DNA from: Phyllobates terribilis
Taxonomy: Eukaryota
Length of the DNA stretch: 64,000 nt
Reading direction: 5' to 3'
Assembly (NCBI RefSeq): GCF_046119375.1
Contig: NW_027362768.1
Coordinates: forward strand, 363,010,001-363,074,000
The position numbers and the translations under genes are program-made. The notes under the pieces were generated by a model. The model made no database searches. It was not told the origin of the DNA and saw only the letters and a program-made list of their open reading frames with translations. Of this stretch, positions 32,003 through 45,006 are shown one piece after another. How positions within the stretch are numbered: the stretch's first letter is position 1; each line of letters starts with the position of its first letter.

Positions 32003-35000
32003 ATGAATAATATGTCCAAGAAAGATGGAGCCCAGGAAAACCCTGCAGAGTATTGTCCGGGTGAGTGTAATAGGGGATTATTTATAATGGTGCAGAAGAC
32101 ACTGCCGAAAATTCTGATTGGTGGAAGTCTGACCGCCGAGACCCCCACAGATCATAAATAACATTTGGATTTTTCCCATCCAAAGAATTATATATTTATA
32201 ACAAATATATATTGTCTACTGATCCTGAGTTACATCCTGTATTATACTCCAGAGCTGCACTCACTATTCTGCTGGTGCAGTCACTGTATACATACTGTAC
32301 ATTACATTACTGATCCTGAGTTACATCCTGTATTATACTCCAGAGCTGAACTCACTATTCTGCTGGTGCAGTCACTGTGTACATACATTACATTACTGAT
32401 CCTGAGTTACATCCTGTATTATACTCCAGAGCTGAACTCACTATTCTGCTGGTGCAGTCACTGTGTACATACATTACATTACTCTGTACTGATCCTGAGT
32501 TACATCCTGTATTATACTCCAGAGCTGCACTCACTATTCTGCTGGTGGAGTCACTGTGTACATGAATTACATTACTGATCCTGTACTGATCTTGAGTTAC
32601 ATCCTGTATTATACTCCAGAGCTGCACTCACTATTCTGCTGGTGCAGTCACTGTGTACATACATCACATTACTGATCCTGTACTGATCCTGAGTTACATC
32701 CTGTATTATACTCCAGAGCTGCACTCACTATTCTGCTGGTGGAGTCACTGTGTACATACATTACATTACTGATCCTGAGTTACATCCTGTATTATATTCC
32801 AGAGCTGCACTCACTATTCTGCTGGTGCAGTCACTGTATACATACTGTACATTACATTACTGATCCTGAGTTACATCCTGTATTATACTCCAGAGCTGCA
32901 CTCACTATTCTGCTGGTGGAGTCACTGTGTACATACATTACATTACTGATCTTCCCCACTTCTGGATCCGCTCAGCACAGGGGCTTCTGTCCGTCATGTG
33001 GCTCAGCCTCACTGTGCCACTGTCTCCACTTGCAAGTCCTTATATCACTCAGGCAACAGTGACACCTAGTGTCCACAGTGAGCACTACACCCTTTAAACA
33101 TTCCAGCAATATCAAGTCTTCCCCATCATCAGTATATTTATATAAAATGCACAGACACTTTGTATTTTACATTGCAAATAAAATGTCAAACCAATATAGG
33201 ACTGGGGAAAATCCTTACAGACAATCCCTTTAAATAGCAAATTAATTATGCAATCATTATCTATGTGCAGAGTCAGCTGCATAAACTCTTACAGCTGCTC
33301 ATTGCTTCTTGTAGGAGGATACCATCCAGTAGAAACAGGGGAGACACTAAACAGGAGATACCAAGTCATTCACAAAGTCGGCTGGGGCTACTTCTCCACC
33401 GTCTGGCTCTGCCGGGATTTACAGTAAGTGGCATTTCTTATTTTTAAGGTTTTCTATTACTGAGACTTCCGACAATCAGTTGGGATCTGTGGTCAAGTCT
33501 GGTATTAAGTTTCCTTGCAGCGCCCCCGCAGGAAGAATGAAGTATTACACAGACCTGTTTTTTTTTCCTTACAGAAAGAAGAAATATGTTGCAGTCAAAA
33601 TATCAAAAAGTGGGAAGAAGTTTAACGAGGCGGCGCTGGATGAAGTCGCTCTGCTGAACTGTGTAATAACTTTTGACATGAGCGTGCAGGTCTTCCATGC
33701 ACCTTCAGAGCTGCATTCATAGTTCTGTTAAGTGACATTCCTACTAACTTATAGCAGTTCCTACAATGGTGTAACATTAACAGCACAAAAGACACAAGAC
33801 TGAGAGATAACTGCAAGGCAGCAGCGTGAAAAACACCAATACTCACCTGTGTGATACACGGGAAGAAGTTAATGAGACTTGTTTCATTTTTTTAGGTAAA
33901 CGGGGCACGAAAAAAAGAATCCCAAGGAGAGAACGTCATATACTTTCTACACGACTTTAAACTGATTGGAGAGAACGGTCTTCATATCCTTCTCGGCTGA
34001 TACATTGTAACAGATCTCAACTCTGACAAACAGATGCACCAAACAGAGAAAAGAAAAAATCTGCAGTACTCATGGCAGAACAGCAGGGGGCAGCACAGGG
34101 GCAAAATACGGATGAGCAACCACTCACACTCCCACCATCCACTCACACCTATCATCCATGGGCGGAGGGTGCATAGTAGTATGGTTCTGCTTGCTGATTC
34201 AATTGATTATCACATGATTGCTCAGATACTGTTGAAATCCAGATGGTGGCACCAGGTTCTCCCCCACTCTAGAGCCCCATAGCATCTGCAAGATCTGCAC
34301 TATAAAGTTCCCTGAAGGAGTAGTTAGGGCCAGTTCTCCGATGGGCTAGTCCAACCCTGCAGATAAGACTTGTATAGGGCACCAGTCACACACCATGCTG
34401 TTAGGGATACCAATGCGGCTGGTCAGCAATATATAAGTACACCCCACTGGGACAGACACCCCAATCCCTCCACCAACACTCCAGGACCAAGCTGCATCTT
34501 GCAAAAGAGGTAAAAATGTGCATTAGGTGATATTGTGGCCCAACGCGCGTCGAGGGTCGTTATTGTCTTTGGGGCCATTATAAGAAATTTACTAAAAAAA
34601 AATCCAAATAATAAAAAAAAAATAAAATAAACACATTTCGCAATACTTTAATGCATTAAAAAAAAGTATTTTTTAAAATATATATAAAAATTGGAATCGC
34701 CCCCTTTGTTTCCCCACTAATTAAAAAGAAATTAAACAAATAAATAGACTTATGTTGCGTTGCTGCGGGCCGTAAAAGCTAAAAATCAAAACACTAAAAC
34801 TGCGTATTTCGGAAAAATGCAATAAGAAGCAATCAGAATGTCTTATGCCCCCCTAAAGGGGATCACTAAAAACGTCAGCTCACCACGCAAGAAATAAGCC
34901 CCCACTAAAAATGGAACAATTACATGTCTTGGAGAATAGTGGTGGGGAGGTTACGTGTGGCTCTTCGGCTCCAAAGACTTCAATACAGAGGGACAGGGAC

Positions 35001-44000: not shown

Positions 44001-45006
44001 TGAAGAGCAGATGCCCCTCTTATAAACCCCAATGTGATATCTAGAAAACAGAGTAATATGGGAAATGGCAACAAATAATAGGAGGAATAATTAACATTAT
44101 CTATTTTTTTTGGTATATTTCAGATCATATCGCCTGTATAATTGAACTGCTTGGCCGCATACCACCCAAAATCGCCTTTTCGGGAAAAAACTCAGCAGCC
44201 GTTTTCAATAAGCAAGGTATGAGGACGGTTGATGTGTAAATCTAATCAAATACCTGATTATTTTAGGGGACATTAACACATTGTTGGATAAAGCGCAGCT
44301 TGCTGCCAATTTTACATGAAAAGAAAAAAAAAACTTGAAAAAACTACAATAATTACAGGATCTTTTTTTTTGCCAAAACAAGTGCAAAGGAAAAAAGGAG
44401 GCACACACAGTAGTAAAAAAAAAAAAAGTTATTCTCCACCAGACTTTTATTTCTATGTATGTATTACAAGCAGCCACCACAAGAGGGAGGCAACACTATA
44501 CGAAATTAACATTGACTACTGTATGTAGGAGCTGTGCGTGCAATGAGCGCCACCTGGTGGCAGCTGTTAGAATTTTTTAATGTCAGTTTTCCAGCTTTGG
44601 AATTTTTTTATTTTTTTTAGAAACCACAGCAGAGATTAAAAAGATACATTTCATTTAAAAAAAAAACATATCATTATTCCCCCAGCAATCGTTTCTTTAC
44701 ATGACCGCTCTAGGCAATTAATGTCCTCATCCATCACTCGCCATATTACTGGTATCCGTGCTGGATAACCCCCTTTAAAAAGAGTTTTATTCCCACCAGT
44801 TTCCCCTTTCCTTTCCTACAGGTGACCTCCTCCGGATTCCATATTTGTACCCCTGCGGCCTGTACGACACTCTGGTGGACCGGCACAAGTGGCAGAAGAA
44901 CGAGGCGCTGCTATTGGCCAGCTTCCTCCTACCGATGCTGGAGTATTATCCGGAAAAGCGAGCGGTGGCGGAGAAATGTCTGGAACATCCCTGGATACGA
45001 TCCTGA
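32003..45006 (+). CDS. SRSF protein kinase (SRPK family, divergent, spacer-less), 387 aa (411 aa if the 72-nt intron is retained), 11 coding exons
   Basis: Exons: 32003-32060, 33315-33423, 33575-33662, 33896-33983, 35146-35252, 36226-36388, 36461-36555, 38487-38594, 39330-39399, 44124-44216, 44822-45006. They sum to 1164 nt with no stop or frameshift. SRPK motifs: [96 protein letters not shown]. The SRPK1/2/3 paralog is not assignable. Confidence 0.93.
32218..32950. repeat. ~80-bp tandem repeat, reverse orientation of the 14003-14304 family, in SRPK intron 1
   Basis: TACTGATCCTGAGTTACATCCTGTATTATACTCCAGAGCTGCAC units, about 8-9 copies. Confidence 0.92.
33984..35145 (+). other. U12-type (minor spliceosome) AT-AC intron of the SRPK gene
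   Basis: 5' site ATATCCTT at 33984, branch-point-like TCCATAAC at 35128-35135 and 3' AC at 35144-35145. Splicing restores the conserved [12 protein letters not shown]. Confidence 0.9.
36690..37720. repeat. Minisatellite, 12-bp unit (ACGATGCTCCAC / ACGATGCTCCAT), in SRPK intron 7
   Basis: Directly visible. It explains the MLHT and VEHR ORFs. Confidence 0.97.
38645..38945. mobile_element. T2-type MITE
   Basis: Ends GGACAACCCC-TTTAA, with inverted GGGGTCCGACATC / GATGTCGGACCCC motifs. Confidence 0.55.
39785..40397. mobile_element. PIF/Harbinger-type MITE nested in the Tc1-B 5' region
   Basis: TIR AGGCCCCGTCACAC / GTGAGACGGGGGCT with TAA/TTA flanks. Internal inverted GGTAACCATG..AAAC..GGTTACTAG blocks. 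Confidence 0.75.
40695..42583 (-). mobile_element. 5'-truncated CR1 LINE (~1.9 kb, complete RT domain) nested in the Tc1-B transposase
   Basis: RT motifs [30 protein letters not shown] and KFADD. (ATTCTATG)n-type tail at 40695-40712. AGAA is duplicated at 40691-40694 and 42584-42587. A 1-nt frameshift lies near 41290-41297. Confidence 0.96.
43392..43681. repeat. 71-bp tandem quadruplication of the Tc1-B transposase 3' end
   Basis: CCTCATCAGGAGCAT...CACAATACTGAG recurs with period 71 (43392, 43463, ...). Confidence 0.92.

Follow-up and report, generated by a model that had tools for sequence, protein, structure and literature searches.

The window, the whole stretch of 64,000 nucleotides (nt) analysed here (contig NW_027362768.1, positions 363,010,001 to 363,074,000 of the forward strand, in the Phyllobates terribilis assembly GCF_046119375.1), contains no N and carries a gene for an SR-protein kinase (SRPK). 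The gene lies at 32003-45006 on the forward strand, and its 11 exons splice to an open reading frame (ORF) of 1164 nt encoding 387 amino acids (aa). It was rebuilt from open frames, the DNA at each exon boundary and tblastn searches with database homologues, and the exon set giving the kinase ORF is unique. The product is identical, residue for residue, to database entry P0154, which NCBI names "SRSF protein kinase 3-like [Phyllobates terribilis]". A preliminary description of this DNA had claimed the same coordinates, an uninterrupted 11-exon ORF and a product of 387 aa, and all of these were borne out. The gene belongs to a clade of short SRPKs that we refer to as S or S-type. The exons, and two of the introns, are as follows.

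32003-32060, forward strand: exon 1, 58 nt, start codon and first 19 residues, ending in phase 1
33315-33423, forward strand: exon 2, 109 nt, GGYH motif and glycine-rich loop region
33575-33662, forward strand: exon 3, 88 nt, VAVK lysine and alphaC glutamate
33896-33983, forward strand: exon 4, 88 nt, strands beta4 and beta5, located via homologue P0002
33984-35145, forward strand: intron 4, putative U12-type, AT-AC
35146-35252, forward strand: exon 5, 107 nt, hinge and alphaD/alphaE
36226-36388, forward strand: exon 6, 163 nt, catalytic loop HTDIKPEN and N-terminal half of the spacer remnant
36389-36460, forward strand: intron 6, 72 nt, in frame and stop-free
36461-36555, forward strand: exon 7, 95 nt, C-terminal half of the spacer remnant and KIADLG
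38487-38594, forward strand: exon 8, 108 nt, P+1 loop (QTQQYR) and start of alphaF
39330-39399, forward strand: exon 9, 70 nt
44124-44216, forward strand: exon 10, 93 nt, DHIA..IIELLG docking-groove helix
44822-45006, forward strand: exon 11, 185 nt, C-terminal helices and stop codon

Exon 1 is a 100 % match to residues 1-20 of P0154, is immediately preceded by an in-frame stop codon and ends at the donor G/gtgagt. Nineteen residues precede the GGYH motif, which agrees with the N-terminal extension of about 20 aa described earlier. The same 11-exon plan is found in the orthologous coding sequences of Engystomops, Spea and the barn owl, and a 109-nt counterpart of exon 2 is present in Engystomops, Spea, the owl, the gar and the SRPK3 gene of a turtle. 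Taken singly, the exons gave only two or three weak Pkinase matches in Pfam, and a representative search with the exon 6-7 piece returned mostly generic kinases, with three close matches. Two frames at 34940-35026 bear a loose resemblance to beta4-beta5, but this stretch was rejected as exon 4, as P0002 pointed to 33896-33983 and the junction works only with AT-AC.

The introns of the gene are GT-AG, with the exception of intron 4. This intron was read as AT-AC because no GT-AG solution at this position keeps the frame, and it is therefore overlooked when only GT-AG introns are allowed. Introns of the U12 type, which are removed by the minor spliceosome, have /ATATCCTT or /GTATCCTT at the 5' site and end in AC or AG, with a branch site resembling TCCTTAAC 10-15 nt ahead of the 3' end. 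Intron 4 has the donor ATATCCTT and a branch-like TCCATAAC approximately 11 nt before the terminal AC, and on these signals is classed as a putative U12-type intron. Its counterpart is AT-AC in the S-type genes of Engystomops, Spea (with the branch site TCCTTAAC), owl and lizard, and is of the GT-AG subtype, GTATCCTT...AG, in the S-type gene of gar and in turtle SRPK3. As the U12 intron is found in both S and SRPK3, it predates the split between them and has switched subtype.

The kinase fold of the SRPK family is defined by VAxK, an alphaC glutamate, HxDxKPEN, and DLG replacing DFG. All are present in the Phyllobates protein, as the preliminary description had stated (VAVK K64, alphaC E79, HTDIKPEN D168 and DLG D229). 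Across an alignment of 67 orthologues, K64, E79, D168, K170, N173, D229-L230-G231 and the H of the catalytic loop are invariant. The match to Pfam Pkinase has an E value of 2.6e-36, and in a phmmer search of the PDB the values were 1e-138 for SRPK1/2, 6e-93 for Sky1p and 1e-32 to 1e-39 for DYRK/CLK. An AlphaFold2 model built from the 67-sequence alignment has a mean predicted local distance difference test score (pLDDT) of 79 and a predicted template modelling score (pTM) of 0.83, and its top 18 Foldseek matches are all SRPK1/2 (template modelling score, TM, 0.86-0.89), followed by Sky1p. In both sequence and structure the closest relatives are thus SRPK1, SRPK2 and Sky1p, not CLK or DYRK kinases. 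In SRPK1 the docking groove is formed by D548, D564, E571 and K615. The equivalents of D564 and E571 (D296 and E303) are invariant in the 67 orthologues, and that of K615 is R in Phyllobates and K or R in all but one of them.

The protein lacks the architectural hallmark of the SRPK family, a bipartite kinase domain split by a long, non-conserved spacer, of roughly 150-470 aa in SRPK1-3 and the SRPKs of invertebrates. Between PENILVCV and KIADLG there are 47 residues, within the range of about 45-50 given in the preliminary description. A hidden spacer exon is impossible, because only 72 nt lie between the flanking exons 6 and 7; this possibility was thereby excluded from the genome, the exon 6-7 junction having no transcript coverage. 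If retained, intron 6 would add 24 residues, for a maximum spacer of 71 aa. In the model, the remnant forms a helix (180-198), a disordered segment (195-209) and two short helices ahead of the DLG strand.

The short spacer is a property of the whole clade. In 78 S proteins the interval from PEN[IV] to KIADLG is 41-54 aa in nearly all (median 48). The same interval is 154-288 aa in SRPK3, 276-473 aa in SRPK2, 182-324 aa in SRPK1, and 344-433 aa in amphioxus, acorn worm and lamprey. The SRPK3 gene of the leatherback turtle has 17 exons, with core sizes of 109, 88, 88, 107, 166, ..., 101, 108, 70, 93 and 185 nt, and between its catalytic-loop and DLG exons there are three extra exons (26, 160 and 249 nt) where S has a single intron. 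Intron 6 sits exactly at the position of these three spacer exons, and its counterpart in other species is 261-1202 nt long. Since turtle SRPK3 adds three spacer exons to the same core, and spacers are also long in the outgroups, the spacer exons appear to have been lost by the S clade, and the simplest reading of the gene structures is that this occurred in the jawed-vertebrate stem.

SRPK3 (also MSSK1/STK23, muscle-enriched) is the nearest natural clade to S, and shares with it the core exon sizes, the position of the U12 intron, and the catalytic and DLG motifs. However, in SRPK3 three extra exons encode the longer spacer, and GGYH is preceded by 54-180 residues; SRPK3 also forms a separate clade, with other genomic neighbours, that coexists with S in the same genomes. 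The spacer-deleted human SRPK1 and SRPK2 constructs used for crystallography (7ZKS, 1WAK and 2X7G) also resemble S. They align with S from end to end, 7ZKS (SRPK1) being also 387 aa long, have the structural similarity noted above, and share with S two stubs of the spacer, namely a helix after the catalytic loop and a segment before DLG. They are laboratory truncations, whereas S is a natural gene, about 53 % identical, in which the N-terminus is also shortened.

Relationships were examined in a careful maximum likelihood (ML) tree of 65 sequences (LG+C20 with posterior mean site frequencies, PMSF), rooted on amphioxus and acorn worm. The SRPK3 sequences of Rhinatrema (P0241) and Malaclemys (P0336), which had odd long branches in a quick tree, were left out. 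The jawed-vertebrate sequences form four clades, SRPK1 (support 100/100), SRPK2 (100/99), SRPK3 (100/99) and S (100/100), and a FastTree of 199 sequences agrees. The Phyllobates kinase falls outside the SRPK3 clade, which itself spans shark, coelacanth, gar and frogs. The S clade includes sharks, coelacanth, gar, Amia, teleosts, amphibians, turtles, squamates and birds, branching in the order of the species tree, and its branches are several times longer than those in the SRPK1-3 clades. S, SRPK3 and a lamprey sequence group together at 93/78.

A word search with the Hyla orthologue recovered proteins of about 380-420 aa from frogs, salamanders, caecilians, turtles, squamates, and palaeognath and neognath birds, and proteins of the same size from coelacanth, sharks, gar, Amia and many teleosts. 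Their automatic names are SRPK1-, 2- or 3-like, or in birds and teleosts plainly SRPK3. When caecilian SRPK3 was the query, many of the species that have S, among them Spea, Xenopus, Leptodactylus, Latimeria, gar, Amia, Python, Sceloporus and Malaclemys, also yielded the true, long SRPK3 of about 530-870 aa, as did mammals. In many species the two genes are on different contigs, and in frogs, caecilians, coelacanth, gar, Amia, snakes, lizards and turtles S is not the sole SRPK3-like gene. No bird or crocodilian was among the best 120 relatives of the true long SRPK3, and birds may lack this gene or it may be missing from their assemblies. One search, covering annotated proteins of 173-551 aa, found no mammalian S member, and its mammalian matches were SRPK1 fragments. 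The S branch would be about 450 million years old, and mammals seem to have lost it.

The preliminary description had proposed a natural minimal SRPK paralog that could represent a fourth, lineage-restricted clade. The first two parts stand, as the kinase is intact, has a short N-terminus and retains no more than a remnant of the spacer, and S is monophyletic and distinct from SRPK1, SRPK2 and SRPK3. The restriction to one lineage does not, because S members with the same spacer of about 48 aa are found from sharks to birds. We conclude that S is very probably a fourth gnathostome SRPK gene, which arose together with SRPK1-3 before sharks and bony vertebrates split and has been kept, without a spacer, by selection.

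Selection was estimated from the comparison of Phyllobates with Engystomops, in which the nonsynonymous rate (dN) is 0.047, the synonymous rate (dS) 0.77 and dN/dS 0.061; these values rest on one frog pair, as the comparison with the owl is saturated at synonymous sites. By region, dN/dS is 0.055 in the N-lobe, 0.081 in the C-lobe and 0.012 in the spacer remnant. Purifying selection is therefore strong, the ratio near 1 expected of a decaying copy was not found, and a pseudogene reading fails. In X. laevis two intact copies (P0176 and P0177), possibly homeologues, are on different contigs.

A single study supplied the transcript data for Phyllobates, as four small runs that were guessed to be RNA and in which most matches were 90-95 % repeat matches. 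In one of them (X3), a low-depth spliced contig joins 38594 to 39330, the exon 8-9 junction, with GT..AG ends, and covers exon 9 with 0 differences. An intronless Logan contig of 1378 nt from a ray-finned lineage encodes a complete S-clade protein, and in Hyla sarda the large number of Gnomon isoforms gives a hint of RNA support. On the sequence evidence, the Phyllobates gene is alive rather than decaying. Two database models are unusual. P0002, isoform X8 of Hyla sarda, skips the 95-nt DLG exon, which puts it out of frame to give 315 aa with no DLG. P0003, of 595 aa, reads through non-coding sequence between the spacer-flanking exons, and adjoins P0173 of X. tropicalis in the quick tree. These models may reflect annotation noise or unproductive splicing.

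The S gene has conserved neighbours. Upstream in the window is part of an ankyrin-repeat gene:

12718-13098, forward strand: ankyrin-repeat exon of the upstream neighbour, an ASB-like gene (Pfam Ank_2, 1.5e-10, and Ank)

In Engystomops and gar the order on one strand is a gene with ankyrin repeats, or ankyrin repeats and a SOCS box, then S, then a gene with UBA and PTH2 domains. S is followed by UBA-PTH2 in Spea and Bufo, and an ASB-like gene is followed by S in Lacerta. The upstream neighbour was assigned to the ASB family because ankyrin repeats are accompanied by a SOCS box in gar and Lacerta. Three models from the tortoise Gopherus (P0180, P0181 and P0186) fuse the S kinase with UBA and PTH2 (Pfam PF22562 and PF01981), and from this read-through the kinase and UBA-PTH2 genes are adjacent and co-oriented in turtles. 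The shared order of neighbours supports orthology across bony vertebrates.

The window is rich in repeats. Most of the gap between the kinase stop codon and the UBA-PTH2 gene is occupied by a minisatellite (46101-52638; 6.5 kb) of approximately 218 copies of a 29-nt C-rich unit, with a G+C content of about 68 % and a strong negative GC skew. Within the kinase gene, intron 1 contains about 8 copies of an 86-91-nt unit (32217-32951), and intron 7 contains about 43 copies of a 24-nt unit (36682-37720) that is really the 12-nt GATGCTCCACAC and gives rise to long spurious ORFs on both strands. Intron 9 (4.7 kb) is swollen by transposons at 40774-43681. These include a CR1/LINE-like reverse-transcriptase ORF of 571 aa on the reverse strand (41270-42985) and the remnant of a Tc1/mariner-like transposase on the forward strand (approximately 42596-43461), both recognized by eye from the translation, and there are four copies of a 71-nt unit at 43392-43681. 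Upstream, kilobase-scale low-complexity tandem arrays at 45-1200, 4010-4950, 5530-8800, 17500-18600 and 20040-21570 contain long repetitive ORFs in several frames, and are probably satellites rather than genes.

With gene structure, identity, clade, selection, spacer loss and fold established, the question is what a spacer-less SRPK would do. In SRPK1/2, Sky1p and Dsk1 the spacer holds the kinase in the cytoplasm via chaperone complexes and contains sites for release triggered by Akt/EGF, and its deletion leads to nuclear accumulation, aggregation of speckles and inhibition of splicing (PMC9202992). It also binds U1-70K and affects stability, while catalysis is spared without it if the N-terminus is intact (PMC10952393). 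Having lost the long-spacer exons and most of the N-terminal extension, and having since been under strong purifying selection, the S-type gene would encode a complete CMGC core of the constitutively active type with a putative SRPK docking groove, and we infer that it phosphorylates the Arg-Ser repeats of SR-type substrates. It would have no tether to Hsp70/Hsp90 co-chaperones and hence no cytoplasmic retention. With the tether and the signal-responsive sites both missing, neither a cytoplasmic hold nor a response to signalling is expected, and the 44 kDa kinase would be nuclear, or move freely between nucleus and cytoplasm, insensitive to the signalling route that acts through the spacer. 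It is perhaps also catalytically slower.

Nuclear localization and uncoupling from signalling are suggested by analogy with spacer-deleted SRPK1/2, with Sky1p and with PSRPK of Physarum (PMC9202992, PMC2754491). The last (Physarum polycephalum, 426 aa, with a spacer of 63 aa) is, like S, a natural short-spacer SRPK; it accepts ASF/SF2 as a substrate and localizes to the nucleus of mammalian cells (PMC2754491). However, it belongs to an unrelated lineage and was shortened independently, and the frog protein has, by eye, no conserved counterpart of the PSRPK nuclear localization signal (NLS) loop, PKKGDKYDK. The CLK (LAMMER) kinases, another family of the CMGC group (E about 1e-32 compared with 1e-138 for SRPK1), are possible functional analogues, as they act on SR proteins, are nuclear and have only a short insert where SRPKs carry the spacer (PMC10952393, PMC12795684). 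CLKs have an RS-rich N-terminus and lack the SRPK docking groove. We tentatively propose that S is the fourth product of the early vertebrate genome duplications, that the three spacer exons and the N-terminal extension disappeared in the jawed-vertebrate stem, and that S has for about 450 million years been an SR kinase that is independent of chaperones, insensitive to signals and nuclear by default, a natural parallel to the spacer deletions made in the laboratory. In the proposed history S was then lost in mammals, which would explain the count of three SRPKs in the field; the loss of ohnologues in mammals is common.

Several points weigh against the main reading of S as a fourth gnathostome SRPK kept as a working kinase. 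The spacer and N-terminus of SRPK1 together speed the release of ADP, and loss of the spacer lowers efficiency more than 10-fold (PMC12795684). Activity without the spacer is said to depend on an intact N-terminus (PMC10952393), which the S kinase lacks, so that it could be slow or differently regulated. At the docking-groove position equivalent to D548, Phyllobates has an aromatic residue, F, and the position is variable across the S clade. Expression in Phyllobates is supported by the single low-depth contig, from runs guessed to be RNA. S evolves fast, and its weakly supported sister relation to SRPK3 could be affected by long branches. The mammalian absence is drawn from annotated proteins in one search, not from genome searches. 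Finally, the activity, substrate class, localization and regulation of the S-type proteins are what we infer from their relatives.

The alternative that survives best is an active S-type kinase that is tissue-specific and largely cytoplasmic, for example with protamine-like or RS-like substrates in muscle or testis. SRPK3, the nearest clade, is muscle-specific, the frog protein has no classical basic NLS by eye, and the chicken gene LOC770936, named SRPK3-like, appears in expression lists for breast muscle (PMC4982197, PMC11667886). The best 120 matches to true SRPK3 include no bird. A croaker "SRPK3-like" transcript is testis-specific (PMC7100973). However, the membership of the chicken and croaker transcripts in the S clade is unconfirmed, a protein of 44 kDa could enter the nucleus passively, and the spacer-deleted and short-spacer kinases cited above are nuclear. 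We regard this alternative as possible but rather unlikely.

Without the spacer and N-terminus, both of which accelerate nucleotide exchange in SRPK1, the protein might serve as a pseudokinase-like scaffold or compete for binding to RS domains instead of working as an efficient enzyme. The fall in efficiency of spacer-less SRPK1 and its dependence on the N-terminus (PMC12795684, PMC10952393) speak for this, as does the fast evolution of the S clade. Against this, every catalytic residue has remained invariant over about 450 million years, which is not expected of a non-catalytic scaffold, and crystallography constructs of SRPK1 without the spacer are described as still phosphorylating SRSF1 (PMC12795684). 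This role is very unlikely.

That the gene is simply the frog orthologue of SRPK3, or a short isoform of it, is suggested by the automatic names (SRPK3-like, SRPK1-like and SRPK2-like), by the weak grouping of S with SRPK3 and lamprey (93/78), and by the U12 intron and core exon sizes common to turtle SRPK3. However, SRPK3 is monophyletic (100/99) without S and includes sequences from shark, coelacanth, gar and frogs, both genes are present on different contigs in many species, and the S locus has its own neighbours, the ASB-like and UBA-PTH2 genes, and no spacer exons. We consider this highly improbable. A decaying duplicate or unexpressed relic, with its frame open by chance, could be argued from the single spliced contig in Phyllobates, the transposons and tandem repeats in the introns and the long branches of the clade, but is dismissed as the least probable reading of all given a dN/dS of 0.061 at a dS of 0.77, 11 exons with all splice signals intact, including a U12 intron that needs precise ones, catalytic residues invariant in 67 orthologues, two intact copies in X. 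laevis, and an mRNA contig in another species.

The gene itself is no discovery, because the sequences are already public under automatic names. In the searchable literature we found no description of the S clade, only incidental mentions; reviews treat only SRPK1-3 (PMC10952393, PMC9202992), and the name SRPK4 refers to an Arabidopsis gene. S is an SRPK clade that lacks the long spacer by which the family is recognized, and its existence revises the usual count of three vertebrate SRPKs. Automatic names are misleading here, as with the bird S-type gene that is called SRPK3. The human counterpart of the upstream ASB gene could locate the region from which the kinase was lost in mammals.

To our knowledge, all that is known of the spacer, namely anchoring, release by signals, binding of U1-70K and nucleotide exchange, comes from deletions in mammalian or yeast enzymes, and an SRPK forced into the nucleus is reportedly harmful to cells. 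The conservation of an SRPK without a spacer shows that such an enzyme is not only tolerated in vertebrates but favoured by selection. S is in this respect a natural experiment on a much-studied regulatory insert, and provides a ready comparison, in tractable animals such as Xenopus, zebrafish and chicken, for establishing what the spacer is for.

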